The notes: generated from the sequence alone by a model not told the origin. DNA of 64,000 nt from Penicillus capitatus (GCA_965649825.1 OZ287710.1:372001-436000), one strand, 5' to 3'. Shown: positions 6,860-63,496, counted from the stretch's first letter. A program made the numbers and translations.

Positions 6860-9800
6860 ATGTCAAGCACGGCGCTATACTCTACATCAACGATCTCAGA
6901 TGATGTCTCCGAAGAAGTCCGCCGCACTGAGAACATCAAAGCGCTTGTCTCTAACTCGTATGGGATGACACAATTTCTTGCCAGGACGCTTATGTTGCCT
7001 TAGTCTATCTGTGTGTCGCACGTCGGTTCTTCCAAAGTATCTCCGCGTGAAACAGGGAGAGGAGAATCTACGGAAGCCTTTTAAATGTCCAGTACGACGT
7101 ACGTCGTTGGGTTCGGCAGATCTGCGGAGACGCATTGCTGCGCGACGCACATTTGTACCGTGGGCCAAGAAACAGCCCTTTCGCCTATCTCTTTCACCCG
7201 AAGTCGGAACAGAACAAGCACCATCCGAATCAGAGTCGGACGAAGAGGAGGAAGAGACGGCGCCAATTGCAGCAGATAAACAGACTGATCTTCCCGTGGG
7301 AGCATCGAAACCAGTGAAGCGTCCAAAGAGTCATCAATGCATTCTTAGGACGGAGTAGAGCCTTTGATCCTGTGGGAGTCTGCGGATGAAGACGCCATCA
7401 AGGAGAAAGTGGAGGTGGATTCTATGCTGACGCAGTTTCTGAGACCACATCAACGGGAAGGCGTACAGTTTATGTTTGAATGCGTGACGGGTCTTCGTCC
7501 CTTTGAAGGACAAGGTATCCGAGCAAACATACCCTTGCCTGTTTACCGGGACATGGACACATCATGTACAGGGTGTATATTGGCGGATGATATGGGATTG
7601 GGGAAAACACTTCAAGGAATAACGTTGATGTGGACATTGCTACGACAAGGAGCAGATGTTCTGGGTGGCAAACCCATAGCAAAACGAGCCATTGTGGTGT
7701 GCCCAACGAGTTTAGTGTCCAACTGGGAGCAAGAATGTGTCAAGTGGCTCAAAGTTTGGTTTGGGGTGCACTTCAGACTCCCGCCAGCAGCTGCCGTCTG
7801 TTTCATCAGGGACGCGCCTCTGTGTTGGGCCTGAGCGAGACGTCGCGCGAAATGGTAATGGCTGGATTGGATGATTTTCTCAGCAAGAAGAATCCTTATC
7901 AAGTCTGTCATTCGGATAGCTACACGGAGATCGGACAGATGTTCTCCAGGTGCTCGTCATTTCGTACGAGACCTTCAGAATCCATGCTACGCGATTCAAG
8001 GACGAACATTCCTGTGATCTCTTGCTGTGCGATGAAGCTCACCGATTGAAGAACGCAGGCACTCTCACAAACAAAGTTAGGCTATCTCTGCCAGCAAAGG
8101 CCGACTATTGAAGATCGATCATTCTCAGGCATTGGCTGGATTGGCATGTAAGAGACGAGTGTTGTTGTCCGGGACACCCATGCAGAATCACTTGGACGAG
8201 GTGATCCCTTTTGTCAAAGGGCCCTCGGCAATCGTGTTTGTTTCCAGTTCTATGCTATGGTCAATTTCTGCAATCCGGGAGTTCTGGGTACGAGAGGAAA
8301 TTTCCATAAGTACTTTGAGACGCCCATACTCCTTGGACGGGAACCGGATGCAGCAGAGGAAGCTGTCGGACTGGGGCAGGAGAGAAGTGAAGAGCTGAGT
8401 GCCTTGGTGAACGATTTCATTCTGCGCAGAACGAATGATCTCCTAAGCAAACATCTACCTCCGAAGGTCTCTCGCCACTCGCTGATCCTTTTGAACCTAT
8501 CTTGGACGAGGCAGATCATCGAGATCGTGTGCTGCAATCTGGAACCCCTACAGAAATCGCTGTACAAAGCATTCTTGGCCTCAACAGCAGCCAAACGTCT
8601 CGTTGATGGAAATGCAAAGGGTGCTCTACCTGCCATTACTGCCCTAAAGAAGCTCTGCAATCATCCGAAACTGATCTATGACGAGCTCTACAGCGTGGCC
8701 GACAAAAAGAGTAGCTCAAACGGATTTGAAGTGCGTGCATCAAATCTTCTCTCTGGTGCCAGTGCATTCATTTTTACCATTGCTGTTGTTCTAGAAATGC
8801 AAAGACTTGCTGCCTCCTGGATTGTTCGGTCGGAGCTCCAGAGCCATGCCTGAGGATTGGATATCGCATTCTGGAAAGATGACGTTGTTGGCTAACATGA
8901 TGGCTATTCTGCGAAATGAGACTCGGGATAGGTGGCATCCATCCTTCCAATCTCCTTCATTTGGCTTCGCTAAACAGGATTGTCATTGTCTCAAACTATA
9001 CGCAGACATTGGATCTGATATCGATTCACTGCCAAGAGAAGTCTTACCCAGTGATTCGATTAGATGGCTCTGTTTCCATCAAGAAGCGACAAGAAATGGT
9101 TCTGCAATTCAATAATCCCAAGAACGATGAATTTGCTTTCCTTCTCAGCAGCAAAGCTGGTGGATGTGGATTGAACTTGATTGGTGCCAACCGACTCGTG
9201 TTGTTTGATCCAGATTGGAATCCGGCCACAGATAAACAGGCAGCAGCACGGGTAGGGAGGTTTCCATTAGTTTTGCTTGTTCTTGTGCAGCCTCTTCGCC
9301 TTTCTATCACGAATTGAGGATTTCACGATGAGAAATCGAATATGAGGCCACAGTGAAATCGAGACAAAAGCGAGATGTCGCTATCAATCTGTCGATGTCT
9401 AGAAATATCTCATACAGTGCGATTGACATCATTGTTTTTTGTGTGATAGGTTTGGAGAGATGGACAGAAGAAATTTGTGTACGTGTACAGATTTCTCTCC
9501 ACTGGAACCATTGAGGAGAAGATTTTCCAGCGTCAGTTGTCGAAAGAGGGTACACCTTTGCAGCATAGCATCCCACACATCCCTCATCACAAGTGTTGTT
9601 TTTAGGCCTTCAGGGTTTGGTGAATAAAAATGGAAAGGCAGCTGCCAGTGCATTGAGTGCAGAAGATTTGAAGGATCTCTTCAGCTATCAAGAAGACACC
9701 ATTTCTGACACTTTCATCTCCATGTGTTGTCCGCGTCTTGAAGAAGACGATGCTGCTTCGCCAGTAGACCCCGTCTATAAGGAACAAGTCTGTTTGTTCA

Positions 9801-10384: not shown

Positions 10385-11140
10385 CTAAACTTTTCCAGCT
10401 GGTGGTTTGAACGAGTTCATAATTCTCTGAATATCTGCTTGGTATTTGGCATAGTCTGTGTCTGTGCACTGAGCCGTGAGTGTGTAGAGTCGATTGTACG
10501 TCCCATCGAATCTAAGAGCGATCAGAGAAAGCAATCTCTTCGCTTCTTCATTTGGTTTCTTCAGTAAGTACTCGATGCTGTACATTCCTCTCTCGCTCTT
10601 GGCAGAGATGAGATCCGCCGTCTGCACGTCTTCGTTTCGCATCTGCCGCAGCCGAGATCCACGAAGGAGATAACGCCGATCCATGGAATTCACCAAATTC
10701 GCTCCAAATTCTTCAACAGTGCCAAAGCTTCCCAGTTTGGTGTAATCGGCTCCGGCGTTATTGATAAGCAGCGTGACATTCACATCTCTGGGTAGCACAT
10801 CTTCGGGATACCACACCAATGTGCGTTCTGCAACAGACACCTTGTTCTTCGACTGGGCCTCTGATCCTGTCCAGTTGCTGGGATAAGACAAGGCGAATCC
10901 GGCAGAGAGATCTTCATAGTCGATCAGATCCTCTTCTGCAAGCGCAGGAACAGCGCCTTCCAAAAATGAGATTACACTTAGAGAAATCGCTCCTTGAAAG
11001 AGGCGACGTCTCGGCAGCGATCTCTCTCCCGTGCGCGAGATCTGAGTCTGTGAATAGGAAGAGCATTCGCATCTGGAACAGGAGGCGACAGTGTTGCGGG
11101 ACTGTCGACCGAGCGGAGATCGCAGACTTATCATGTGCAT
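10385..11140 (-). CDS. PPD3: PsbP-domain protein (PPD3-like), thylakoid lumen
   Basis: Transit peptide, twin-Arg RRRLF, hydrophobic stretch and ALA cleavage site. PsbP motifs YTKLGSFG and RLYTLTAQC. Single exon. Confidence 0.85.
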   Translation of the reverse strand: MHMISLRSPLGRQSRNTVASCSRCECSSYSQTQISRTGERSLPRRRLFQGAISLSVISFLEGAVPALAEEDLIDYEDLSAGFALSYPSNWTGSEAQSKNKVSVAERTLVWYPEDVLPRDVNVTLLINNAGADYTKLGSFGTVEEFGANLVNSMDRRYLLRGSRLRQMRNEDVQTADLISAKSERGMYSIEYLLKKPNEEAKRLLSLIALRFDGTYNRLYTLTAQCTDTDYAKYQADIQRIMNSFKPPAGKV

Positions 11141-11227: not shown

Positions 11228-12213
11228 ATGTCAATGAAATTGTCCCTTGCTCTCAGAACGCAGCCGCGTTGCTTTCCTCCCCAACGAACGCCATACCATG
11301 ACAGACTGTAAGCAGTGTCGAAAGAGATCGTATCCCTGCTGAGTATAAATGTTGATATGAAGGACTTGTAAAGCAGGAGAAAGGTCATTGCGTTTGCCAG
11401 GAAGTCCTGGAGAGACGGCAGATCAGGCGGTGACTGCTGCACAGACTGCTTTAAATGACGGCCTCACAAAACAGTGCATTGAATTTCTGCCACCTCTCAC
11501 AGGCGCAACAGAAATCGATGATTGGTAAGGCACGACGGTATTCAATCTGCTGCAGATCCCCACCACAAGATGGGTTGTTTTCAAGGCCAGGCGGCATTCA
11601 GCAAATGTTCAATGCCATTCTGCCAACAGTGGAGCGCTTCTTACTGGGCGTCAAGAGAATAGACGCCCTGCAATGCACATTGCAATCTCAGATGCTGGAG
11701 GAAGGCGACGCCACTGCCTTCTGGAGTGGTGAGCATCTGAAGGCCCTTCTCTTTCCGACACCCGAAGCTCTTCTCAAAGCCAAATCCATGGATCCCCAAG
11801 ATGCCAAGCTCTTTCTCCTGATCAATCCGCAGTGGCAAGAAGGCCAAGTTATCTCAGACTTCGGTTTTGGCCAAAGAAAAAAAGATATCGAATCTTTTTT
11901 GGGAGACTTCCAGTACACGTACTTCCTCAAGACGTACAGAATCGAGGGACTGAGCATACGGTTTGTCTTGCCTAATCGAATCTCCTGGCCTTCTCATGTT
12001 CAGTACAGTGTTCTGAGGTGTTACCCCAACGACTGGTGCATTTTACTGGCTGACAACGAAGGCAAGGAGATCTGTCTGAGCGAAGACAAGGACAGACCAA
12101 ACTATAAACGCATCCAGAAAGTGCTTCAAGAAAAAGGACTGGTGTCCGGTACTCTGTTTGAGAAGCTGAAAAAAGAGTTCGATTTCAACATCCAATCCAT
12201 TAGAGATCCCTGA
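11228..12213 (+). CDS. DUF1995-family plastid protein
   Basis: Spliced product reads LPGSPGETADQAVTAAQTALNDG..IDDWPGGIQQMF..LLFPT..LLINPQW..DFGFG..VLRCYPNDW. Transit-peptide-like N-terminus. Confidence 0.75.
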
Positions 12214-12333: not shown

Positions 12334-15300
12334 ATGGATTTGCGCTGTGATGAGTCTTTGTCTGCTGAGGACATGGACGTCGACCGCTCAGAAAGCTCGA
12401 AGGAAGAGGAGGCGTACTGCGTCGAAAGGACGACGCAGAAAGCCTCTTTTCGCACGTCCCTTCAGCCAAGAGGTCCAGAAACGCAATGCTGTCGTGCGGA
12501 ACGCGCAGCAGACGCCGTTTCCGTCAAGCGGCCCATCGACACGCCCAAGCCCATCTCTTCACCCAACGCCAAAGCGCAGCGGACCTGCGACCCAAGTCAG
12601 CGAGACGGTGCGATGACGAAGGGGATTGACGCGTCTGTCTTTCCATACAGACGACAGTGCGACACTCACTCGTTTGGTTTCTGATCTGCTTGAAGTGCGC
12701 CATCCGACCATGCCTATCTGCACACGCGTCTGGGCGAGGGTTTGAGTTGAAGGCGTTCGACTTGACAGAGCATCCATGCCGTGTCGTGTGTTAGGTCATT
12801 GGGTTTTGCGACTGGCCCAGCGTTATATGGGCGTTACACCTCTGTCCGCGATCTCAATGGCCAGAACTCATCGAGAGCTACGCTCCTGGTATGGCCGTTG
12901 AGTTCTGCTACAGGATAGCAGAAAGAGAGAATGATTTAGGGAAGGTGATGGTCTTGTTTTATGGCGAGAGGACAATTATGTGGGTCAATCACGGCAGGCT
13001 TTATCCAATCGACGACAATCAAGAGAATAGGATCAAAAATTTGAACAAATGGGGAGAAAAGAACGCACAGTAAGATCGTGCGATCTCGTAAAGTCAGGAG
13101 AGAGTTGGTGGTGATAGGGGCAATCTTGTGACAGCCGCGCTGGATGAGTTGAATTACTCCTATGACGATGTCCTGTCGGAGTTGGAACGCCTGCAGCATC
13201 CCAGTTCGCTCTGCGTTTCGGCATCGAATGAAACAGTGCCGCCAGAAATGTGCCAAAGCTGCCATGAATTCAACGTGGATGTCTTCTGTGAGAACTGCAA
13301 GCAAGGATGGCATACATTGTGTCTTAAGCCACCTGTCCTGCGGAAACAGAATTTCAAGGAAGGCGAAACGTGGATCTGTCAAGCATGTGGTACACAGAAT
13401 ACCGTAAGGATAGAACCTTCACCTTTCCTTCCAGAACTTCAGCAAATGTTTCCTAGGTACACATCGAAGAGAACGAAGAAGAGGAAGGAGCGAAAGAAGA
13501 GAATGGAGAGGCCAGTGGCTTGACGCCTGATTGGATCATTCATGCAGCAGCGCACGAGGTGTTTTTGCTTGAGGTATGCTTGCCATACACACACGTCCTT
13601 GGAATAACGCTTAACGGATGCCCATGTGTCTTTTTTCTACCTTAGAAGCCAGCACCAGAAAGAAATTTCATTCCTGGACTGCTGGATCCTTGCACAAACG
13701 ATAAAGCGAACCCGAATATCCCTGCAGAAAAGCTCTATGACAAGAATGATAATGGACTGAAGCTCTCAAATCCGTGGGCGGGATACTATGTCATTCTCAA
13801 CCCCGATTACAAATCGCAAGTTGGTTACCTACCCATCCATGCTCCTACGATCGACGGACTGTGTCTTTCCTTCCTGTCAGGTTCAATGGAGATTTGTCAA
13901 TCGCGCGATCGATGAAGTTGAGAATGATCGTGTCCCTGCTGTGATCTTGATCTGTCGAAATTCGACAGACACTGCCTATTATCAGAGACTCAGGCCATAT
14001 CCACGTGTCTTGCTGAGACGACAATGCGTGAAATTCAAGAACTATGAAAATACGCCGATTGGATTCGGCATTGTCGTCTTCTGTGTGGCCAAGAGGAATT
14101 GGAAGAAGCTTTATTGTCGTTTCTTAGATGCCTTTTCTCCTTACGGAGAATCAAACATGCCAATCGATTTGAGTTTGTGCTTTCTTTTTTCCGAGAAAGA
14201 GACGAGAGCTGACTGGATGTCGTGTGCAGAGACTCTGCAAGACAGAGATTTCGTGGCATTGACACAACGCATACATGAGCAGGCAGCCATGAGCTATCGA
14301 GATCATTGGATGCAGTGCAATGCATGTAAGAAATGGAGAATTGTACCGTATGAAGTCTTTACAGAATTCAAAGACAAGGAATGGCAATGTTCAGATCTCA
14401 AGTACTGTTGCTCTTGCAGCCTGCCTCTCATTCTTGAACGAGATACCACATCCAGATCGAATACCACATGCCTCACTCTTCAACGCAAAGTGGAGGTCAT
14501 GGGAGTGACATACGCCAGTGGGGTGGACAAAGGTGTGGAGAATGTAGTGGAGATGCCTGAAGGAGTGGAGCATACCACCAATGAACAGAATTTAATAAAG
14601 GAGTCTGACATGGGAATGCAGGATGCAGCACCCGAAGTATGGCACAATCTTTGGCAGCACGTCAGGGGTTTCTCGCCATCCAGTATGATGTAGATGAGAA
14701 AATCGCGTCTCCTCAAGCGACAGGGGAGGATCTTACAAATTTTGCGAGGAGGATAGCCTGTCAGTCGACGCTGTCTAAATTGGCCAATCTTCCACCAAGA
14801 AGCAATGTCAAAATCATGCAAGCCTTGGATGTCACATCAGAGAGTAAGATTCACCAGAAGGATCTGGCACTAAGCTCTCTCGAGCTGGCACGTCAAGTCA
14901 GCCATTACGTTGTGTCATGAAGGACAGCCATTGAATATATGTATGCTTTCTAGGCACGGATGGCTGCGAATCGAGCTTATCTAAAAGGATTGGGGAAGCA
15001 GCCAGCAGCCATTCACAGAGGAGAGGTCGAGGCGCTGTCGGCAACTAATGGCTTGGTGCTGGATGCTGCCAGAGAGATTGCTAAGAAAGCCAAGGTGGCA
15101 GAATTAGAATTGCAGGTGATCGATGAAGGACACAATCATGATCGCCTTTGTCGTTGGCCTTTTTCGATTTCCTGTTGTCTGTAGTATCAAAAGACGCGGC
15201 GCCAGTGTGAGACCCTGAAGAGAAAACAACAAATCGAGATCAGCCGTTTAGCAAAGCAACTTGAAAAGAAAAGAAAGGAGGAAAGAGATGCCAAGCAAGC

Positions 15301-15379
15301 AAAAGAAATTGCGCTGGCTGCAGTTCAAGAGCTGGAAGAAAAGGTGAAGAGACTGAGGGAATCAGGAGAGTGTATTTAA
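12334..15379 (+). CDS. Chromatin protein: PWWP-like + PHD + Dam-like DNA N6-adenine methyltransferase domain + zf-CW + coiled coil
   Basis: PWWP-like RVWARVIGFCDWPS..VLFYGERTIMWV. PHD CQSC..CENCKQGWHTLC..WICQAC. MTase TPDWII..LLDPC..NPNIPA..NGL..W..VILNPDY..W..AIDE..NSTDTAYYQRL. CW WMQCNACKKWR..WQC. Confidence 0.8.
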
Positions 15380-24240: not shown

Positions 24241-26358
24241 ATGTTTGCTGATAGACCTCTTTCGCAAACGCGACCTACACAGTCGCTCTCACGCAACTCC
24301 GTGGTGCACCGATGTAGATCCAGTAGTGGAAGGCGGCGTTTGTTCGTTCGATCGGTGGCAATGCCCATGCAGCCGCCCACTTCGAAACCTGCAAAGCGCA
24401 GCAAGGTGGAGACCATTAAAGAAAGAAGTGATTTTTTGCGCCATCCTTTGATGCAAGAGCTCGTCAACGAGAACCCATATATCAACGAAGAAGCCATGCA
24501 GCTGATGAAATTCCATGGAAGCTATCAGCAAGACCATCGAGAGAAGCGCGCTTTTGGACAGGGAAAATTCTATCAGTTCATGATGCGTACTCGACAGCCC
24601 GCCGGAAAAGTGCACTGGCAACTTTACGTGGTGATGGATGATCTGTCCGATCAAGTGAGAGCAATGATTGATATCGAGTCGTTTGTCATTTTCTGAATGC
24701 TACCGCAGTTTGGGAGTGGGACACTTCGACTGACCACGAGACAGACGTTTCAATTGCATGGTGTTCTGAAACAGGATCTCAAAACAGTCTTCTCGACGGT
24801 GATCAAGAATATGGGTTCTACTTTGGGCGCATGTGGAGATCTGAATCGTAACGTCATGGCTGCATGCGAAGTCTATGCGAATCGACCCGAATATCAGCAC
24901 GCGGCCAGATATGCAAGAGACATTGCGGATCTCTTGGCACCCCAGTCTGGTGCCTATTACGATGTCTGGTTGGACGGCGAGAAATTTGTTTCCGTCTACA
25001 AAGAGGTAAGAAGGAAGCCTACACAGGCGGATGGAGCAGTCAGCAAGATACTGTTCTTCTTCTAGGATCCAAAAGTGACAGCTGACCGTGCGTTCAATCA
25101 GCATGGGACGAATTTTGATGCCAGTCCTGAACCCATCTATGGCACGCAGTTCTTGCCGCGGAAGTTTAAAGTCGCTGTGACGGTTCCTGGAGATAACAGT
25201 GTGGATTTGCTGACCAATGATATCGGCGTTGTGGTTATGTGCAACGATCAGGGTGAGCTTGAAGGATTCAACATCTTGGTTGGTGGAGGAATGGGACGTA
25301 CACATCGTAACGAGAAAACATTTCCTCGATTGGCCGATCCTCTGGGCTATGTTCCCAAGGATGATATATTCCACGTCGTCAAAGCCATTGTCGCGACACA
25401 ACGTGATTATGGCAGACGAGACGATCGCAAATATGCTCGAATGAAGTATTTGGTTGATGAGTGGGGAATTGATCGTTTCCGCAAAGTGGTGGAACAGTAC
25501 TACGGAAAGGAGATGGAGCCCTTCAAGGTTCTCCCAGCTTGGGAGTACAAGGACTATCTGGGATGGGGAGAACAAGGAGACGGTAAGCTGTATCATGGCA
25601 TCTTCGTGCAGAATGGACGCGTCAGAGGTGGAATCAAGAAAGCGATCAGAGCAGTCGTCGATAAGTTCAAGCTGCCCACCATCATCACCCCCAACCAGAA
25701 TATCATCCTCACAGATATCGAGCCAAAGTGGAGAGAAGAGATCAATAAAGCACTGGCAGACGGGAAGGTGGCACCCGTGGAGGATGTCCACGCCATCGAT
25801 CGTTTGTCTATGGCCTGCCCTGCATTGCCGCTTTGCGGTCTGGCCATTGGCGAAGCAGAACGTGCCCTTCCAGATGTGAACAATCGTATCAAGAAGCTCA
25901 TGGCAAGTACTGGAATCGAAGAGGTTCCTGTCGTTGTTCGGATGACCGGATGTCCTAATGGCTGTGCTCGTCCATACATGGCTGAGCTGGCGTTTGTGGG
26001 CGATGGAGCCAATTCCTATCAGGTATGGGTGGGCGGCGATGCTCATCAGACACGTCTCGCTCAAGTCTACAAAGAACGTATGAAGATTGGAGACCTGGAG
26101 TCTGTCCTAGAGCCTTTGTTCTTCTACTACAAACAGTCTCGCGATGTGAATGAAGGATTTGGAGATTTCTGTGCACGAATCGGTATACAGGAGCTTCAAG
26201 AATACGCAACGGGCTACATCCCTTCAACCAAGAGACCTGCATTGCCTGGAGTGAAGGTGGATGATGTCGTTCTGGAGAGATTGGAGGCCTTGGCGAAGAC
26301 GCAAGGAAAGACGGTGGATCACTTGGTCAACGACATGCTTCAAAAGATGTCGGGTTGA
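24241..26358 (+). CDS. SIR: Ferredoxin-dependent sulfite reductase, plastid
   Basis: [38 protein letters not shown]. Siroheme/Fe-S ligands CPALPLC and TGCPNGC. Two introns. Confidence 0.97.
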
Positions 26359-39621: not shown

Positions 39622-41700
39622 TCAGCACCCATCTGTCCGTGTTGAAATCACGAGTGTGGTCTTTCCGTCATCGACGACCTCGGCCTCCTTCTCGCAATTG
39701 GCATCCACTTTAGCAGTGCGAACTGCATGAATGGACACTGTACCACTCACGGCACCCGATACAATAAGGAGTGGATCCCTAATGGGGCTGTCCTCGGCCG
39801 AAACAAACACCAGACCTTCTGGATCGATATCTACAAGTTCCTTATTGTTGTAATGCTCGGCCCATGTCTTTCCATGTGCACCTACGATGCAGAGGTGATT
39901 TGGTGATTGCATGAAACACAGGAGATTGAACCTGGGTAGTAGGTGGACTGCCAAACGGGAGAGAGAGGATCAGAGGCATCATAGACAAAAATAGCACCTC
40001 CTCTCTCGAGACTGACACAGACAACTCGACGGTCTGACAAGTTTCCCACAGCCACAGCTTCAGGCTCTGGTCCCCTGGATGTCGAACGTACATCAGCTGT
40101 GTCATTTGGAATAGCCGTCAATGCCATCGATGGAAGCTCAAGCCCATCCACCTCGGGGACTGACCCGATGGACAGTGACTCCGGGCGTTCTCTTTCTTCA
40201 AAAGCAGCGGTAATCAACTCGTCCAAGACATCAGCATCAATAAGCGTGTTGGATTCGAGGCTCGCCTCAGCAGTGTCGGCTGTATCTGTGGGAGGTTCTA
40301 GACAGAAGCTGTCCACTGCATCTGCATTGAAGGCCCATGGCATGAAGGTTCCCATGACACGTTCAAAATCATTTCCACTGTCGTAAACTTGTTCCATATT
40401 GCTAGCTTTATAGATCGACCAGCTGCGGCCACCATACGTCACCAGTCTACAATAAGGGGATATCTAACAATACATGGGCGAGTCAAGAAGCGCTTTACCT
40501 GTCATATATGTTCTCGCCGTCTTCAGTTTGTCCGGCAATTCCATCGACGATGCTGATTGGCAAGGTGCCAAGACCATTTGGATCGGCCAATGCTTCCACC
40601 GTCTCGTCCGGAATGTCTTCTGTTCGATTGGCGAGTTCAGCACCATCGACATACTCAATCCAGCTTGGAATGCCCTGGTGGTCTTCATCATACTCTTTCT
40701 GATCTCCTTCATTGGCAGTGATAATGAAATCTTCGCCTTCATGCGAGAAAACAGCAATAGCATCTGGTTGAAAGACTGAAAATACTCCACTCCACGATCG
40801 CAGGACACCAGGTCCATCCGTCGCACTTGTGTCCAGTGCGTTCTGTTTCTGACTTAAGTCCTTCTCGCCATAACTTGTGATTGACGTAAAGCGATTGGTC
40901 TCCAGATCCAACACAGCCACGGCATTATTCTCTTGCAGATTCACAAAGACAGTCTTGCCGTCTTCGGATACAACAACTTGTTCTGGTTCTAAATCTTTGC
41001 TTAGTGTTTGACTGGCCATCATGGACGGTTTCAATCCTTGTCCTCTCCAGATCCAACGGACGCCGTTTTTAATGACACGCTCAGTGTCATCATTGAACGA
41101 TGTGAAATCGACTGTCTCTACAGCTGCCTCCCCTTTCTCCAGTTTCTTCATATCAATGATAGAGACAGATCCCTCTGGGTTAATGAATTTTCCTTTTTTG
41201 GTCATCCCTGCTTCACCTTCGTTGGCAACAAGGAGCTTGCTGCACTGTGGAGTGAAGGCAATAGAATCTGGCAAGGCACCAACCTCGACTTCGTGGAGAA
41301 GCTCGAGTCCATTGTCTTCTGTATACGGTGAATAGATGAATACGATTCCTGGACTGGACTCTGGATTGGCTGGCATTGTGGCAGCGATGTAACCGCCACA
41401 ATGCGCGACATCTGTTACCTCGCCAGGGATTCGTGTTGTAAAGACGACGACAGGAATCACAGGGTTCGAGATGTCAATAACGCGGAGTTGTTTATTCCCT
41501 GAGACATAGACATAAGCAGTGGCAGGGTCGTAAACAAGCTGTTCGGCTGCAGCGTCTCCGAAACAATAAACCTCTCTGCCACTCTCGTCGAATTTAAACG
41601 GCAGGTAAACTTGGGAGAGTCGTTCCAGAATGATTGGTTCAGTGCGGACTGTTACAAAGAGCAACGCAGAAAAGAGAATCCATGCAGGTGTCAAGGCCAT
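39622..41700 (-). CDS. MSP130 / choice-of-anchor I alkaline-phosphatase-like secreted protein
   Basis: Signal peptide. AAEQLVYD, VGALPDSIAFT, LVANEGE, NPEGSVSII, LEPEQV, VNLQENNAVA, QPDAI, TANEGD, YGGRSWSI, GPEPE, DPEGLVFV. Confidence 0.85.
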
Positions 41701-42017
41701 TTGATACGAAAACGAGACGAAAAGATGCACTCAAGATAACAACAGCAGCCGCGACTGTCCGCATCTCTGACAAACGACTTTGAATATTCGGTGAATCTGA
41801 ATGTAACAGAGAACTTCAAGGAGAACCGTTGTTGGTCGGTTTGCTTGAAGTCATCATCGCTAATTCATCTACTCACTCAATCTGTTGGAAATGTAGCGTC
41901 CAATCCGTTGTTCATAGCCATCGGAAGCGGTTTGGTGTCATGGTAACCACATCGGCGCGCTGACCATCAGCCGTGACGGGTGCTAACCTCCGAGTCAACT
42001 TCCTGCATCGGGTTCTG

Positions 42018-44275: not shown

Positions 44276-46293
44276 TTATCCTCGCATCTCTTCATCCTTT
44301 GGAGGATCGATGCGAATCAGATCGTCGACGCGGAGAATCGTGATGGTCGCTTCTGTTGCGAACTTGAGCATCTTTATCTTGGCCATTGCTGGTTCCAACA
44401 CCCCGGCTTTGACACTGTCGCGCAACGTGCCTTTCACCAGATCCAATCCATAGGTGGCCAAATTCTTCTTGTCCGCTTTGGTCTGAGCTGCATGGTGATA
44501 GGCGCGCAGACGGGCCACTAATTCAGTGGCATCCTTGGCAGCATTGACAGAGAGTGTCTTGGGAATGACGAGAAGCGCATCTGCAAATTCGGCAATAGCC
44601 AGTTGCTCTCGCGATCCCAGAGTCGTGGCGAAGCTTTCCAGGTAGACGGAGAGAGCTGTCTCCACGCAACCGCCTCCCGGAACCATAGAACCCGATTCCA
44701 AGACACGCTTCACAATACACAGGGCGTCATGGATGGAACGATCGATTTCATCCAGCATGAAATCATTGGCTCCGCGCAATAGAAGTGTCACAGAACGTGT
44801 ACTCTTGCAGCCCTGCATGCAGAAATCAGTTCATTTGAGAACTAGAGGAGAGTGTGCTGGACTGAGCACCTTGATCACAAGGATTTCGTCGTCGGCCACT
44901 TGCTCTTCGTAGACTTCATCAGCAGATCCAAGCCAAGCAGGATCGAACGTCTCTTCTCCTGCGGACGGATCTGATTAACCAAATAAGCTTCATCGTTGAA
45001 AACGAACCTTCCATATCCGCCAAACTCACGACAACTTCAGCTCCTGTTGCTTTGGCAATACGTCTGTATGAAAAAGGGTGTGGAGAATTGAATGATAGCC
45101 ATTGCCAACTATACCTACCTCAAGTCATCCTTAGGTACTCTTCTCACAGCAATGGATTGAGATTCCACAAAGTACTTAAGACATGTATCATCGATGCCTG
45201 AGACAGACAAGACTCAAATTCATTGTCTGCCGCTGGATGAAAGTTCAATTGGATCGCCTTTTGTTGTCAAGACCACATTGGCTCCTGCATCCAACATCTT
45301 TTGTATGCGCACTTTGGTGATGTCCATTTCTTGGTCGCGCAACTTCTCCAACTCAACCGGATCTGTTACAACAATGGAAACTCCCAACTGCAGTCGCGTC
45401 TTCTGAAGGTTCATATCCAAACAGGCGATCTTGGCCTGAGTCACTCGATTGGGCATGCCCTGAGCTGCTCGACTCTGCAGAAGAGCATATCCCTTTAACA
45501 GCATCCTCGATTCTGACCTAATTGTTGACATGGATGCTCACTGGCAGTAGACTGCTCTCCTTTGTCCCTTTTCCGTGTGCCTTAAGCACGTTTACAGATT
45601 TGATGGGATATGTGACATTGCCACTGTCGGACGTATATTTCACAGAAGTGATGGCATCCACCACCAGTGCTGCAAAGAAGTCCTCTTCAGCCGAAATGAA
45701 TTTGGAAGACATGGATGTCTTGGCGGCATTGATCAACACATCTTTGCCAAGTTTTTCATTTCCAATAGCCAACTGTTCTTCGATGAATTTGCATGCCTTG
45801 ATGCTCATGCAGTCACATCAGACACATGACAAAGGCAGACAACCACACCTCTTTCAAAGCCAGTTTGTAGCCGCTCATGATGCTGGTTGGGTGGATCCGT
45901 GTGCGAATCAAGTTGTTTGCGCGTTTTAATAATTCCGCAGCAATGATGACCACAGAGGTGGTCCCGTCTCCGACTTCCTCGTCTTGCAGTTCAGCCAAGT
46001 CGACCAGTACTTTGGCGGCGGGGTGCTCCACTTCGAGGAGTTTCAGAATCGTCGCCCCATCGTTCGTGATCGTCACATCACCGATATCGTCCACGAGCAT
46101 CTGTGACGCAGCGATATGGTTCAATGCCTTCGAGAACACGGGTTGTATCGACCTTATCGAGACCAACAGGTCCGAGAGAAGACTTGACGATATTGGCAAT
46201 AGCCGCGACGGCTGTCACATTCTGCGTGCGGACATCTTCGCCCGATTGGCGCTGTCCATGAAATTGTAGACGCGCAGGTGCAGTCAAGGCCAT
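44276..46293 (-). CDS. CCT1: Chaperonin CCT alpha subunit (TCP1)
   Basis: [65 protein letters not shown]. Seven introns. Confidence 0.97.
45198..45257 (-). other. GC-AG intron (60 nt) in CCT1
   Basis: Conserved LTTKGIDD requires removing GCGATC...CTCAG. The unspliced frame hits TGA. Confidence 0.85.
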
Positions 46294-52392: not shown

Positions 52393-54167
52393 CTAATTCA
52401 AATCTGATTGACAGGAGTCAACCACTTCAGACACAAGGCTTTGCAGAAATGCGACTTGTGCACTGCTCGAATCCATCTTATTGTCTTCAAACCCAGTAAT
52501 CTGCGATTGCACGTCATTCTGGCTCTCTGAATCCTGAAGTGCTTGCGATGCTGTCATGCAAGCAAGGTTGATGCCTTCTTCGTAGCGCTGAATGCTGTTC
52601 AGGTTCAGTTTGGATGGTGCATAGACAGCTTGCGCATAGAAGAACGCAGTTGTCAGTGCCACAACAACAATCGTCACAATCCACCCGACAAACACTTTGA
52701 GAAGCAAAGGCAGATTAATCCCTCGTCGTCCTTCCACTAGACCCACTGCAGTCGTTGATCCCACCTAGACCCCATTCATGCTGATTGCTCGAGGCAGTCT
52801 GTCCGTGGCATTACTTGACAGTGGGTTGTGGATAATGGAATGCCATAGATGGATCCAAATGCGATCACGGTGGCTGTGGCAAACTCCATGGCGAATCCTC
52901 TAGCCGGGGAAATCTTCACCAATTTCACCCCGATGGCACGAATGATGGTGTGTCCATATATCGCCAGTCCTATCACGATACCGCCGCCTCCAAGCACCAG
53001 AATCCACATAGGCACACTGGAGTTCTCTGCTACACGTCCATGGCGATAGACGCTATAAACAGCTGCTAAGGGACCAATAGAATTGGCAACATCGTTTGCT
53101 CCGTGCGCAAAGGAAACACATGCAGCCGTGAAGACCTGTAGATAGGAGAAGCAACGCTCTGTCGAAGCATCAAATATTTCAGACTGTTGATGGACGGCAT
53201 TCACTGTTTCATCTGACTCTATGACACCATGCACATCGGTCTCTAGTGTCTTTGCTGCCAGAGACAGATACGAAGAAGAGGCCTCTGCGTCCTTTTCTGG
53301 GTTTCTGAGTGCAGGAGAGACGGACATCTCACTATCATTTGTCTGCACCAGAGTCTGTCTGTCTTCCACGGCAGATCTTTTCTTCAACCAGGGAATAAAC
53401 TTCCACCAAAGCAGCACGGCTACGGTGATGCTGACAGACCATGCGATAAGACTTGACCATCCAAATCCCAAGACGTCGGATATTGATTCCTTTTTGCCAT
53501 GGTGATGAACTTTCTTCTTGTCAAACCCAACCAGACAAATGTAGTAGACGTTTATCAGACATGCCAGGCCCACAAGGAATGGGAAGAATGTCAGAGATTT
53601 TTCGAACGATCTTTCTGCACGAAGAATGAATGTTCGAACAAACAAGAAGAGACCGACTGCCAGACATCCAGCCAGAATTGGACTGGTGAGCCACGATGCA
53701 ATGATGGGGACGACCCCTTCGAATTTGTCCAGTCCAGATTTAGAGCCGTCGTATTCAAACCACTGGACAGCACTCCACCCATGAGCAACCAATGTGAACC
53801 CAATGACGCCTCCGATGGTGGAATGGGTGGTAGAAACCGGAAGCTCGAGGTAACAGGCGAGTAGAAGCCAGAGGCCGGTGGCTGCAATGACACACATCAT
53901 ACCATACATCAAGAGCTCTGGCTGAGCATCAAATCGCTTTGTATCGACCAGTCCATGCGATACCGTTTTGGTAACGTCCGCTCCGAGGAGAACGGCACCG
54001 GCGAATTCAAAGACGGCAGCGATGGCGACTGCCTGCACTAAGGTGACAGATTTTGCGCCGACGGACGTCGCAAATGCATTGGCCACATCATTGGCACCGA
54101 TGCCAAAAGAGGTAAAGAAAGCAAAGAAGATGCTTGCTATGAGTATCCAGAGGTAATCGTTCCACAT
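52393..54167 (-). CDS. PiT-family (PHO4 / PTB-type) Na+/phosphate symporter
   Basis: FGIGANDVANAFATSVG, ELPVSTTHS, SFAHGANDVANSIGP, GIPLSTTHCQ. One intron. Confidence 0.95.
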
Positions 54168-54404
54168 GGTTCGTGCGCAGCTGTGAATCGCTACAGGTGA
54201 GGTGAAGAATGATGGGACGTTGCTCTTGCCGCCACCCACCGATCTGAACAGGAATATTCGCGCCTGATCGCGCCGACAAAGAAATTTCCAACATGCGAGC
54301 CATGTTTTTACATTGGACAATGAAGTGCAGAAAGTCGACTTTTAGTATCAAACGATGATCGGAATCTGACTTTATGACATACCGAATAGAAAGCGATTAT
54401 GATT

Positions 54405-55836: not shown

Positions 55837-58550
55837 ATGAACTTCATGACGATACGCTGTTGCACAGACGAGGAGTCGGCATCCAGTGAAGAAGAAGCGT
55901 TGTCTGACGTGGATGACAGCAACATTCCCAACAAGAAAGTTATTATCCTTGGGGCCGGCGTGGCTGGAATCTCTGCTGCGTTGTTCTTAAAGGCACGCCC
56001 TACCATTTCGGTCTTTCTGTTCGAACACGACCTGTGTGATGTAGAAGCACAATGTTGATGCGGTGGTGTTGGAAGGGCGCGATCGAATTGGTGGGCGAAT
56101 TTACACAGACTATCACAGCTTTAGTGCTCCAGTCGATCTCGGGGCTTTCATCATCACTGGTACTCAATGATGTGATGCAGGTTATTGTCAGATGGGAAAC
56201 GACACGTAGGTGCGGATCCAGACCCGAGTCGAAACAGCGCATGTGATCCGTGTGGACCCATATCGCGCCATTTTGGTCTGGGACTGCATTACCTAGACAG
56301 TCGAACATTACCCATCTATCATGAAGTGTACAAGCAGACACCCATTCCACATGACATCGACAGAAAAAGTGCATTGTACGTGTCTTTCGCATTGTTCTGG
56401 GCTTAAACATGTCATAGATTGTTTGATCGCATTCTGGATGGTATCGCTGACCTGCAATCAGACAGTGAGGATGTGGTCGTTGCTGTCGATGATGCTCGCA
56501 GTCTGGGAGAACTGTTCACTCAATGTGTTGAGGAGTACGTTGACAAGATCGAGATGCCCAAGGAGCAGACCTCTCTAACGGATACTCATCATATTCTTGG
56601 CAGTACCATAGATACCAGTGATCTTGAACTGGTGGAGGATATACATGGCGTCAAGACTCCAACATCATCAACTTTAAAACAGAAGCGATCAACTGGTGTG
56701 GACGATGATCCAGATCCTCCAGCCAAACAGGAAAGAGATCCAAGCCCAATCAGAAAGAAGCTCAAAATCACATGTAGAGGACAGAAAGATGTCGTTCTGG
56801 ATGTTTACACAAAGAGCAAGACATCCTCCGAAAGTGCAACACAATCACCACAGGGTGTCAAAACAATGTCATTAGCACAACTGTGCCCGGCAGAGAAAAT
56901 GAAGAAAATGCAAGAACTGAAAGAACCTGCACAGATCAAGGACTCGAAACCAGCGCAACAAAAAAGCGACAAAGCAAAGGCCACAGATATGCACAAAGAG
57001 AGTCCAAAAATGAGCAATATTCGAAGAGGTCTGCTCTTAAGGCCAAATCTATGAGTTCTATGTTTGTACTTAATGTTCCGTTTCAGGGCGTGGGCGACCT
57101 CCCAAGAATCCATTGACCCAACCGAAGATCGACTTTGGAAATGGTCAAGAGACAAAGCAATCGCACCATCTAACTCCAGCAGGTCGAATGCACACATGTC
57201 CCTCTAAAGATCCAAATACTGGCAGTACTAGATCCTGCTGCCAAAGTGGATGTCGTGATGTGGCACAAAGCTCATCTGGAGTATGGATGCGGAACTTCCT
57301 TGAGCAACTTGAGCAGTGTACACTGGAATCAGGATGAAGACTATGGCGGCTTTAATGGCAGACATGCCATCGTGAAAGGTGTGGCAGCACGAGACAGAGC
57401 AAATTCTATCGACTGACGGTCTCCCTCTGCAGGTGGATTGGCACCCCTTCTTGAAAGATTGAGCATTGGACTCGATATCAGATTAGAGATGATAGTAAAC
57501 AACGTAGCCTACGGTTCGGATGGTGTTCGAGTGACATGTCAAAATGGTAGTGATCTCAGCACATCGAATAACAGGGAATGGATGGTGTTTAGGCGATGTG
57601 TTTGAGGGTGGATGCGTGATCTGTACCCTTCCTTTGGGCGTATTGAAGTCCACAACAGTTACATTCACTCCTCCATTGCCTGCCTGGAAGGAGAGTGCCA
57701 TCAAGAGCATTGGATTTGGAAACCTTAATAAAGTGGTGCTCGAATTTCAATCTGTTTTTTGGGATGCATCCATCGACTATTTTGGCATTGTGCCTAAACC
57801 AAGTCGTCCTTCGGAGAAGACGCATACGTCTGAGCCTGCATCCAACCACAGCTTTTCTTCGTCCAGCACTCCAGGAGCCACATCTGTCGAGAGTCAGTAT
57901 GAGACTGCTGGATTCTGTTTCATGTGGTGCACGGCATATCGTTACACAGGCAAGCCCCTTCTGACAGGCATCGTTTCTGGAAGTATGGCAGACAAGGTCC
58001 AGATATCTAATCTACCTTCCTCTGTCAGCTGTGGCATTGAGGTCTGTCTGCCTTATCAGGTCGAAGAGATGAGTGAAGACAATGTCATTCAGATGGCTTT
58101 GAGCAATCTTTCCTCTGTCTTTGGCGACTGTGTTGCCTCTCTCTTTCTTCGTGGAAAAATGACACGTTGGAAATCGGATGTCTTCTCCAGAGGATGCTAC
58201 ACCTATGTCCCTGTGGGCATGAGTGGCAAGGGATATGAGAATCTCGGCCACCCGATTCTGGGGCATGGATTTGGCGTTCTGTTTGGAGGAGAGCACACAA
58301 ACAAGCAACATCCAGACACCATTGGAGGCGCCATGATCACAGGTGTGTCTCGAACGCCTCCTTTCTGTTAATGCTGTGTGGTATGCCAGGCGTCCGCGAA
58401 GGAAAGAGGGCACTGCACTTGTTGTACGGTCCTGATGCCGCAAAGAGGAAGGTGCAGGTGCCGTCCGTACAGAGGGCTCGTGATCAAGATGCATCTGAGC
58501 TTCTATTTAAAGAAGCAGAGGCAGAGATTGTCCGCCTGCACAGAAATTGA
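55837..58550 (+). CDS. LSD1/LDL3-like flavin amine oxidase (putative histone demethylase), no SWIRM seen
   Basis: [58 protein letters not shown] (catalytic Lys), [14 protein letters not shown]. Confidence 0.85.
55993..56044 (+). other. GC-AG intron (52 nt)
   Basis: Donor AAG/GCACGC. Splicing is needed to join ALFLK to [18 protein letters not shown]. Confidence 0.8.
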
Positions 58551-61605: not shown

Positions 61606-63496
61606 TTATGCGACAGACAGTGTTTTTACCATATAATGTCCTTCAAGATGGTATCCTAGTTTTCGATAGTAATGTCGTGTGCCGACTCCAGATATAACGA
61701 CGAGTTTCTGTGATCGATGCTCCTTCATGGCAATCTCCTCTGCCTTCTCCATGAGTAGCGTTCCGTAGCCTTGATGCTGGAACTTTGTCGTGTCTCGACC
61801 GTGGACAGAAACGGCAGTGCCATAGACATGGAGTTCACGAATAATGGACGTTTTTCCTCTGAGTTCTGGCTGACGTTGTTTGTCGGGGCCTTGACATTTT
61901 CTCAACCTCAACAGTCCAACGAGAATGTCTTTTTGAGGATCTTCATAGGCAAGGAATGTCTCCCAGCTTCCGTTTGCTGAATAATCCCTTCGGATAAGCT
62001 CCACTTCTGTTGGCCTGATTCGATTGTGAATGTCTTGGATGCCCACTTCTCTTGTACGCACGTCGCGGCATCGCAATCCAAATTGAGCCATCCGAGCAAG
62101 AGCTAATTCGCGAAGATTGCCCTTCTCCACTCCAGATGTGACCAAAGGCATCGGGATATCTCGCTGAACACGATAGACACGCACCCATGGGGGCACTAAT
62201 GCCAAGATCCTGGCAACTAGATCCACCAACTGCACATCGATAAAGAGATCATCCACCGATCGCCATGAGAGATGTCAGTCGCACTTTGTCAGGGTGATAG
62301 TTCTTGTAGAGACCCTTCTTCCATAGCTCATAGAGTCCAGTTCCTCGAATGACGAGAGTTGGATAGATTTTCAGTCCATCCGTACGAAAATCAGGATTCT
62401 CGAAGAACTCTCTGAAGCTCTCTATGTCTCTCTCCCATCCAACATTCGGCAGATCAGGCATCATATGAGCAACCACTTTAAATCCAGCATTCTTTGCCAG
62501 CTGGAAACATCTCTTCACTGCCTCTACTGTGTGACCACGATTTGTATCACGGGCCACATCCTCATATATGCTTTGCAAACCAATTTCCAGCCTTGTGCAA
62601 CCGTAAGAGAGCATCTGTGTCAGATGTGGCATCTGGCAGAAATCGGGCCGCGTCTCGATGGTTAGCCCAATGCATTTCGTTCTGCTCTCTTCTGAGTAAA
62701 CGACAGCTTCCTCCACGTTGCGGGATGTGTGGCCTGATAAAGCATCATGGAGGTTGCGAATGAAGTAGTCTCTGTAGTCTAGTGGGAGCGACATGAATGT
62801 CCCGCCCATCAAAATAAACTCGACTTTGTCGACGTTGTGTCCAAGCTTCCTCAGTTGCTCGACTCTGTTTCGAGCTTGAACATATGGATTGTATCTGTGA
62901 AGGAGAGGGTACTGAGGACAGTTAACATGAACACAAGATCACACACCGTGCACGAATGGCTCTCATGCTCGTAGGCTCATATCCTGTGTAAGACTGTGTG
63001 CTGTATTCGAAATCCGAATCGGGTCCCCCTGGACAGTAAACGCAGATGTTCCCAGTGGTCGCAATGTGTGGACATCGATGTGGCTTTGACATGACAGCGA
63101 CAACTGCAATGCCAGATGCTGTTCGAACTGGTTTTGCACGCAACCTACAATGGAAGCGTTGATATTTCGATTGAGCAGATCTTGCAGACAACTGTGGCAG
63201 AAGAACAGATTTGTACTCCTCTGGCACAGCAGCAATAATCTCGACGAGCTTTGGTGCGCGACTCAGTCCATATTTCTTTGTCACCTAATCGGGAAGGCGA
63301 CGTTTTGCATTCTACTACTCTGTCGGGGACCTTTGTTTTGAGATCATTCAGGTCAAGTGTCTGCCCACGAGTCACTCCGCGAATCAAAACGGTGACGATC
63401 TCGGCGACAGCGCGAATTCGATCCTACTACAGCGGGATGTTCTCGCAAACGTCTTTTGATCGATGCACTGCCAACCACCTCTTCATTTTTCTTCAT
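61606..63496 (-). CDS. ELP3: Elongator subunit ELP3 (radical SAM + KAT)
   Basis: [56 protein letters not shown]. Confidence 0.97.

Follow-up and report, generated by a model that had tools for sequence, protein, structure and literature searches.

The gene described here lies at positions 12334–15379 on the plus strand of a 64-kb window of DNA from Penicillus capitatus, the window being the whole stretch that was analysed. It encodes a protein of 792 amino acids in which a small core, related to the Dam-type DNA methyltransferases of phages, is combined with three histone-reader domains. The domains follow one another in the order PWWP, PHD, methyltransferase core and zf-CW, and after these come a conserved C-terminal helix and a long coiled coil. 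The gene is intact and its structure is established here. Judged by its sequence, it is a full-length ortholog of the first family of "chlorophyte-type Dam" proteins, a family already known from comparative genomics. The clade was described by Iyer, Zhang & Aravind in 2015 (PMC4738411) and also by Iyer et al. in 2011, and the first family is usually present in single copy and restricted to chlorophytes (PMC4738411). The function that we lean towards is that of a nuclear S-adenosylmethionine (SAM)-dependent N6-adenine DNA methyltransferase that would act on chromatin. The initial annotation of this DNA had stated that fusions of Dam to chromatin readers are known in chlorophytes from comparative genomics and have hardly been characterised biochemically. 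Both points agree with the literature, as Iyer et al. (PMC4738411) described such fusions and a literature search found no experimental work on the family; the term "chlorophyte-type Dam" was found in no paper of the library searched besides Iyer et al. (PMC4738411).

The Dam-like core and its motif IV

The methyltransferase core comprises about 190 residues between the PHD finger and the zf-CW finger (residues 314–505, positions 13523–14288) and spans three introns. The initial annotation had placed a Dam-like, PF05869-type fold between these readers and had noted that it can be read only after splicing. The placement is borne out, with three readers recognised by Pfam around a core that matches phage methyltransferases in sequence profiles and in predicted fold, and so is the need for splicing, since the core is split over 13457–13573, 13646–13819 and 13881–14172 and runs into 14230–14288. 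When a profile of the algal family was aligned with four PF05869 phage proteins by hhalign, the probability was 97.7% with an expect value (E) of 2.5e-12 over 95 columns, and the motifs LDPC, DGL..W, NPPY and RTDT were paired motif for motif. The PHROG profile phrog_111, "DNA methyltransferase", matches 30 of 30 sampled members of the family (E 3.2e-9 for the window protein and 8e-11 for the best member). The initial annotation had left it as a question whether the spliced core would match a methyltransferase at all, and a match was thus found with both hhalign and phrog_111.

The motifs of the window protein occur in the order of phage PF05869 proteins, namely TPDW, LLDPCTN, DNGL..W, NPDY and RNSTDT, and the sole departure is an aspartate in place of the second proline of NPPY. 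LLDPCTN (13679–13699) is the counterpart of the phage LDPC in the hhalign alignment and is invariant in the phage proteins and in the family; it is the probable strand and loop of the SAM site, with a predicted role in SAM binding. The link to phages can also be followed by direct searches. The window core gave no match at E ≤ 0.01 in tblastn against phage genomes. With an NPPY-bearing relative as a bridge, tblastn found phage genes annotated as DNA or N6-adenine methyltransferases, and four of the proteins found in this way are clear PF05869 members (48–117 bits, E 1e-12 to 1e-34). PF05869 itself matches 8 of 30 family members weakly, with a best E of 9.8e-4 and with 15.8 bits for the top member, P0060, against a cutoff of 28.1; TIGR01712, the NCBIfam model for phage N-6-adenine-methyltransferases, matches 6 of 30 weakly. 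These weak matches (E ~1e-3) fall in members that carry NPPY. The label "PF05869-type" therefore stands as far as homology to bona fide PF05869 phage proteins is concerned, while the Pfam threshold for the family is not reached. The core is, on solid sequence grounds, a diverged homolog of PF05869-type Dam that lies below Pfam's own membership threshold. Pfam scans of the window protein gave no match to MT-A70 (PF05063), and its motif, NPDY, is not of the DPPW type; nor was there a match to PF02086 (MethyltransfD12, the classical Dam/DpnM family).

The predicted structure is consistent with this assignment. An AlphaFold (AF2) model of the core of the Caulerpa lentillifera ortholog has a mean predicted local distance difference test score (pLDDT) of 89.8 and a predicted template modelling score (pTM) of 0.87. 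Compared with BFVD, a comparison of a predicted model with predicted models and not with experimental structures, it gave nine matches at E ≤ 1e-3 (1e-8 to 5e-4) with top template modelling scores (TM) of 0.6–0.68, and the named ones are phage N6-adenine or DNA methyltransferases. The core is also under strong constraint. Across 105 orthologs 52 of its ~195 positions are at least 97% conserved, and identity across the chlorophyte classes is 50–78%.

Motif IV of the window protein, NPDY, occupies residues 382–385, which map exactly to positions 13799–13810 as the initial annotation had given them, and it aligns with phage NPPY in the hhalign alignment. The first residue of motif IV serves in proton handling and the last in base stacking, and inactive partners of adenine methyltransferases have an eroded motif IV, as in NALW of MTA9 and EPPL of METTL14 (PMC7544214). 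Is the aspartate in the third position of NPDY a sign of such erosion? The comparison of orthologs gave an answer in two parts: the asparagine, the proline and the aromatic residue (Y or F) are invariant in 105 of 105 sequences, and the aspartate itself is not, the third position being D, E, S, P or A within a family consensus of N-P-x-[YF]. NPD[YF] is found in Ulvophyceae and most Trebouxiophyceae, NPE[YF] in Volvocales, Chloropicon, Pseudoscourfieldia and Cymbomonas, NPP[YF] in Auxenochlorella, Helicosporidium and Tetraselmis, and NPAF in Gonium; many unnamed metagenome members, probably marine prasinophytes, have NPPY or NPSY. NPDY is not a defect, because this is the usual form of the motif in the Ulvophyceae and Trebouxiophyceae of the family and because the third position is free to vary. 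It is probably a normal, catalytically active variant, and the ortholog comparison removes the main sequence-based doubt about the predicted activity.

The variation at the third position has a pattern. An acidic residue is present at motif position 3 or 5 in 101 of the 105 orthologs, and at neither position in the other 4. In 55 sequences position 3 is acidic (NP[DE][YF]x) and position 5 is then non-acidic, with one exception. With P or S in position 3, E nearly always stands at position 5 (NP[PS]YE, 46 sequences). Tetraselmis, whose sequence is outside the 105-sequence table, has D at position 5. These counts, taken over 13799–13813 of the window and the same columns in the 105 relatives, ignore kinship, and as the sequences are related the pattern must reflect a few events rather than 105. 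Its scatter over the classes suggests that the acid changed places between positions 3 and 5 more than once, and it looks as if a carboxylate has moved within the catalytic loop. To our knowledge this alternation has not been described before.

The full-length search gave 111 relatives, and every named one is from a chlorophyte (Caulerpa, Bryopsis, Ostreobium, Chlorella, Micractinium, Coccomyxa, Trebouxia, Volvox, Gonium, Tetradesmus, Chloropicon, Pseudoscourfieldia, Cymbomonas and Tetraselmis). Many marine metagenome sequences are among them, the best relative is that of Caulerpa lentillifera, and Bryopsis carries two copies. With 52% overall identity to the Caulerpa protein, the window would belong to a related but distinct green alga, probably an ulvophyte, and an identity of 73% sets it apart from Ostreobium as well. 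A profile search of 1.84 billion representatives gave 3290 matches at E ≤ 1e-3, and among the 150 matches listed all belong to the family; a word-indexed profile search returned further family fragments only. No relative was found in the viral contigs of IMG/VR, so nothing points to a recent donor among giant viruses. The domain content of the family varies. Two relatives from marine metagenomes (P0098 and P0100, 1263–1364 residues) have PF18755 (RAMA) in place of or beside the usual readers, in agreement with the Dam-RAMA fusion of Bathycoccus reported by Iyer et al. (PMC4738411). Relative P0143 (318 residues, from a Logan assembly) is a divergent stand-alone core with NPPF and Pro/Ala-rich tails, without reader domains, and is 38% identical to the window core. 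Phytophthora DAMT1-3 were considered as characterised relatives and rejected, as they are PF10237 and not PF05869 proteins.

Gene model, reader domains and C-terminal region

The hand-built gene model has 13 exons and a coding sequence of 2379 nt that starts with ATG at 12334, ends with TAA at 15377–15379 and contains 792 codons without an internal stop; the homology to the Caulerpa lentillifera ortholog, P0001, is full-length. There is no long single open frame in 12334–15379, and the frames chain through short introns. All 12 introns are GT..AG introns of 43–72 nt, between 12608 and 15184. Three of them (12889–12939, 14173–14229 and 14402–14455) are in frame and free of stops, and a plain open reading frame (ORF) reading of these would insert 17–19 spurious residues in the PWWP domain, the methyltransferase core and the zf-CW finger. 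The introns at 12889–12939 (51 nt) and 14402–14455 (54 nt) were called from insertions of 17–18 residues, bounded by GT and AG, that are present only in the window when it is compared with the five closest full-length relatives. Excising the intron at 14402–14455 lifts the score of zf-CW from 26.5 to 29.6 bits and past the Pfam threshold. All 13 exons align to the Caulerpa ortholog without frame breaks, with 23–85% identity per exon. Overall identity is 52% across 814 alignment columns and 78% in the methyltransferase core, and the two main methyltransferase exons are the best conserved part of the protein (79–85%). By tblastn there is one copy of the core in the window.

Exon 1 (12334–12607) encodes a disordered N-terminal region. 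Its DL(R/Q)CDESLS start aligns with Caulerpa, and the equivalent part of the ortholog has a pLDDT below 50. The PWWP domain (residues 117–192, 12725–13058, Pfam PF00855, E 1.6e-7, 32.2 bits) spans two introns. It starts in exon 2 (12651–12739, 40% identity to Caulerpa) and continues in exon 3 (12795–12888, 58%) and exon 4 (12940–13069), and the in-frame intron before exon 4 was placed from a 17-residue gap in all orthologs together with its GT..AG ends. Exon 5 (13118–13403) encodes, according to the gene model and Pfam, the C-terminal helices of PWWP and the PHD finger (residues 240–286, 13248–13388, C4HC3, Pfam PF00628), which scores 24.2 bits against a cutoff of 24. The gene model and the family alignment assign to exon 6 (13457–13573) an acidic linker and the start of the methyltransferase core with its GLTPDW helix. 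The core then runs through exon 7 (13646–13819, 79% identity), from LLDPCTN through NPDY, and exon 8 (13881–14172, 85% identity), with the QWRF helix, RNSTDT and FKNY, and ends in exon 9 (14230–14401), of which the coding part up to 14288 belongs to the core and which also holds the first part of zf-CW (gene model and Pfam). The zf-CW finger (residues 511–556, 14304–14495) spans one intron, and Pfam PF07496 matches it at residues 511–544 with 29.6 bits. Its last cysteine lies in exon 10 (14456–14636), together with a variable linker, and the in-frame intron before this exon was placed from the ortholog gap. In the gene model exon 11 (14684–14896) holds the rest of the linker and the start of the C-terminal motif, which continues with a helix in exon 12 (14954–15115, 65% identity to Caulerpa), and exon 13 (15185–15379) encodes the coiled coil and the stop codon.

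In the spliced protein PWWP, PHD and zf-CW all score at or above the Pfam gathering scores. By sequence, the closest solved relative of the PWWP domain is that of NSD3, the PHD finger matches the fingers of ORC1b, KMT2D, UHRF2, ATXR5, CHD4 and AIRE in the PDB, and the closest solved relatives of zf-CW are the CW domains of MORC3 and ASHH2, with both tryptophans of W-x-x-C and K-W-R kept. Among 26 full-length orthologs, the W, C, C, W, R, W, C and C of zf-CW are invariant, and the C4HC3 zinc ligands of PHD and the aromatic residues of PWWP are invariant or nearly so. The conserved residues of the PWWP domain in the family are G119, W132, W137, Y164, G165 and W171 (Caulerpa numbering). Because cage and zinc residues are kept in this way, the three reader domains look functional; the marks that they may read are suggested by their relatives only.

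The C-terminal motif KDLALSSLELARQARMAANRAYLKGLGKQ (residues 662–690, 14858–15001, spanning one intron) is present in 27 of the 111 relatives and is a confident helix in the ortholog model. Its consensus is VLTALELARxARIAANRAYLxxLG, usually with acidic residues before it and a long coiled coil after it. Neither the PDB nor Pfam contains a counterpart of the motif, and the matches of a profile search with it were all fragments of its own family, which points to a family-specific element. A likeness of LELARxARIAANRAYL to the RPA32C-binding helices of UNG2, SMARCAL1 and TIPIN was considered and dropped, as the spacing does not fit, no PDB match was found and the profile search stayed within the family. 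The final long helix (residues 712–788, 15065–15364) is a probable coiled coil, in which many K, E, R and Q residues follow a heptad-like pattern, and corresponds to a single helix at 731–815 in the ortholog (pLDDT 77–90).

The model of the full-length Caulerpa ortholog has four confident domains, disordered regions at 1–92 and 567–642, a short helix over the C-terminal motif and the terminal helix 731–815. Its pTM is 0.37, which leaves the relative arrangement of the domains undefined. The best PDB matches of this model are the DNMT3A2/3B3 chains on H3K36me2 nucleosomes (E 1.3e-6, ~500 aligned columns, TM 0.11–0.15), followed by H3K36me-reading PWWPs (TM 0.5–0.75). As the global TM to the DNMT3 chains is so low, the likeness is one of architecture and not of one rigid fold.

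Proposed function and alternative explanations

How might such a protein work? The analysis shows the structure of the gene, its domain content, the homology to phage Dam, the orthology and the strong conservation of the catalytic motifs. From these we infer catalytic activity, the DNA substrate, the histone marks that are read, dimerisation and any relation to AMT1. The small core, which would descend from phage PF05869-type Dam enzymes, would flip a target adenine into its pocket, where the asparagine of motif IV and the backbone of the proline would hold the N6 amino group and the aromatic residue would stack on the base. The three histone-tail readers would position the enzyme by multivalent reading of H3. 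The PWWP domain appears akin to H3K36me-binding PWWPs that also bind DNA, the PHD finger to fingers that read the N-terminus of H3, and the zf-CW finger seems to be of the H3K4me-binding type. The recruited enzyme would methylate nearby linker DNA, and the C-terminal coiled coil probably dimerises the protein or tethers a partner. Iyer et al. proposed the same role for the family (PMC4738411). N6-methyladenine (6mA) in chlorophytes sits in linkers between H3K4me3 nucleosomes (PMC12695648), which is where an enzyme guided by CW, PHD and PWWP would be expected, and this distribution speaks for the proposed role.

Several observations weigh against a DNA adenine methyltransferase on chromatin. 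Activity has been shown for no member of the family in the literature. When eukaryotic PF05869-like domains of retrotransposons and of an endogenised adintovirus were expressed in dam-deficient E. coli, 6mA did not increase (preprint 10.64898/2026.05.21.726589). Where 6mA is robust in eukaryotes it goes with AMT1, and in the chlorophytes tested it is centred on ApT (PMC12695648); there is no leftover 6mA signal that calls for a second writer. NPPY-type enzymes can also modify glutamine or lysine in proteins (PMC7544214). The window protein itself has no PF05869 match at E ≤ 1 with the full protein or at E ≤ 10 with the core, and its structure was predicted by proxy, from the Caulerpa ortholog, which has a 78% identical core and also NPDY. 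There is no close solved structure either: in Foldseek the core model gave only marginal PDB matches to class-I methyltransferases, with E. coli Dam as the best (E 0.049, TM 0.32), and the family profile found no match at E ≤ 10 among PDB sequences.

The existence of eukaryotic 6mA writers other than AMT1 is disputed. We offer only tentatively, as a possibility that we rather doubt, that green algae have in this family a second writer of 6mA, one that is independent of AMT1. Such a writer would be DNMT3-like and de novo, would read H3K4 and H3K36 methylation and would seed linker 6mA that is then maintained by AMT1, and the relaxed motif IV would be an adaptation of the pocket. If this were true, it would be the first chromatin-integrated DNA adenine methyltransferase outside MT-A70 shown in a eukaryote. 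In a recent survey the only species with robust 6mA were those that encode AMT1 (PMC12695648).

The alternative that survives best, which we consider unlikely, is an active enzyme whose main substrate is something other than DNA adenine. The readers would then deliver it to a chromatin-associated RNA, an RNA:DNA hybrid, or an amino group on a histone or another chromatin protein. The sister clade in the classification of Iyer et al. is PCIF1, an RNA cap adenine methyltransferase (PMC4738411), and PCIF1-like proteins of giant viruses are among the BFVD fold matches. HemK2, which has NPPY, methylates glutamine and lysine in proteins (PMC7544214). The authors of the E. coli experiments, in which eukaryotic Dam-like domains gave no DNA 6mA, suggest a DNA-RNA hybrid (preprint 10.64898/2026.05.21.726589), the 6mA of chlorophytes is accounted for by AMT1 (PMC12695648), and the unusual acid at motif position 3 or 5 could mirror a changed substrate. 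However, every characterised or annotated sequence relative is a phage DNA methyltransferase, and the Pfam scan found no RNA-binding domain. PWWPs bind DNA besides histones, the domain order is that of the DNA methyltransferase DNMT3, and some members (P0098 and P0100) carry a fused RAMA domain, which has been linked to adenine-methylated DNA (PMC4738411).

It is less probable still, and in our judgement quite improbable, that the protein is an inactive reader scaffold in which the Dam-like domain has no catalysis and serves as a structural or nucleic-acid-binding module of a multivalent histone reader. Position 3 of motif IV does depart from the canonical (D/N/S)-P-P-(Y/F/W) (PMC7544214), but it varies freely in the family, including back to P, while the positions around it do not, and known inactive paralogs show an eroded motif IV (PMC7544214). 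The canonical FxGxG of motif I is absent, but the phage PF05869 enzymes likewise lack it and have LDPC instead, which is invariant here. The Dam-like domains of DIRS elements were judged inactive by Iyer et al. (PMC4738411) and activity has been reported for no eukaryotic Dam-like domain (preprint 10.64898/2026.05.21.726589). Against these stands the conservation of the core, which is higher than that of any other part of the protein. The balance favours an active, chromatin-guided enzyme over an inert scaffold, because all 105 orthologs have kept the asparagine, the proline and the aromatic residue of motif IV and because conservation reaches 97% or more at 52 positions of the core. That the gene is a pseudogene, or that a wrong splice model has strung frames together by chance, is so improbable that it can be set aside: the gene model uses genomic sequence alone, the removal of the three in-frame, stop-free introns relies on comparison only and the exact protein is absent from the public protein collection, but all 12 introns are GT..AG within a narrow range of lengths, 792 codons are free of stops, every exon aligns to Caulerpa without frame breaks, and three domains score at or above their Pfam thresholds.

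The chromatin-directed DNA adenine methyltransferase thus remains the reading towards which we lean. Green algae keep, under strong constraint, what appears to be a phage-derived adenine methyltransferase that is tied to three histone readers in the order of DNMT3. The family is still a serious candidate for an adenine methyltransferase that is guided by chromatin and lies outside MT-A70, and the Penicillus gene itself is an ordinary member of it.

Neighbouring genes and comparison with known systems

Only 120 nt separate the ATG at 12334 from the end of the upstream gene at 12213, and this short gap points to a compact genome. The upstream gene is a DUF1995 ORF (11455–12213, plus strand), and before it lies a PsbP-family ORF (10385–11140, minus strand), for which no exact protein match is on record; no functional connection of either with the methyltransferase is obvious. 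PsbP-like and DUF1995 proteins are typical of organisms with green plastids, and the neighbours, among them also a nitrite/sulfite reductase (25075–26358, plus strand) and a PHO4 phosphate transporter (52776–54320, minus strand), fit a green alga. About 3.5 kb upstream an ORF fragment of an SNF2-related helicase, possibly a chromatin remodeller, is found at 8257–8853 (plus strand). Further along the window there are more ordinary nuclear genes, namely a Cpn60/TCP1 chaperonin (44276–44818, minus strand), a flavin amine oxidoreductase (57544–58371, plus strand) and an Elp3-like ORF with a radical SAM C-terminal domain plus GNAT (61606–62256, minus strand). An ORF of 411 residues at 40495–41730 (minus strand) has a "choice-of-anchor I" domain and an LVIVD repeat. 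These domains occur mostly in bacterial surface or secreted proteins, and an old transfer or a poorly annotated algal family is possible. Scans of the whole window for tRNA genes and with Rfam gave no tRNA gene and no Rfam match.

Nothing essential in the Penicillus gene differs from the first chlorophyte-type Dam family, which has orthologs in Caulerpa, Bryopsis, Chlorella, Coccomyxa, Volvox, Chloropicon and marine prasinophytes. Three points are added here to the description of that family: the finger that separates PWWP from the core is a canonical PHD, members from Ulvophyceae and Trebouxiophyceae have a C-terminal helix motif specific to the family together with a coiled coil, and motif IV has the form N-P-x-[YF] with an acid at either position 3 or position 5. 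The phage Dam proteins of PF05869/TIGR01712, such as Geobacillus phage NIIg9.7 gp54, Staphylococcus virus IME1354_01 and Mycobacterium phage KristaRAM gp98, share with the algal core the motif order TP, LDPC, DGL..W, NPPY and RTDT and a similar predicted fold. However, they are stand-alone proteins of 140–170 residues with NPPY and without readers, whereas the algal core has ~190 residues, is sub-threshold in Pfam and NCBIfam and has NPDY.

The DAM domains of DIRS and DAM-LTR retrotransposons and viruses (preprint 10.64898/2026.05.21.726589) are likewise PF05869-like, with a pocket of the Asn-Pro-Pro type, and occur in eukaryotes including green algae. They sit in transposon polyproteins, whereas the gene in the window is a host gene with introns and chromatin readers. 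The eukaryote-wide screen for DAM domains in that preprint found mostly retrotransposon copies and, as its chlorophyte host clade, multiple copies in Chlamydomonadales (preprint 10.64898/2026.05.21.726589). As PF05869 scores are sub-threshold in the present family, the DAM-model screen probably did not capture it. AMT1/MTA1 of the MT-A70 family, the established eukaryotic writer of 6mA, is present in chlorophytes and would share with the present protein its proposed product, 6mA in chromatin near H3K4me3 nucleosomes (PMC12695648). AMT1 belongs to another methyltransferase clade, however, with DPPW, and forms a heterodimer with AMT6/7 plus p1 and p2, without PWWP, PHD or CW.

For the readers, ZCWPW1 and MORC3 are the systems to compare, since both read H3K4me3 through zf-CW. 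Their cage tryptophans are kept in the algal zf-CW, and ZCWPW1 likewise combines CW with PWWP. They are readers or ATPases without a methyltransferase domain, and the specificity of the algal CW is only predicted. For the protein as a whole, the best functional analogy is the domain order of the animal de novo methyltransferases DNMT3A and DNMT3B, in which a PWWP domain (H3K36me2/3 and DNA) and a PHD-like ADD domain (H3 tail) precede the catalytic domain. The DNMT3 enzymes have no zf-CW, and their catalytic domain is of an unrelated family with a different chemistry, C5-cytosine methylation with a PC motif.

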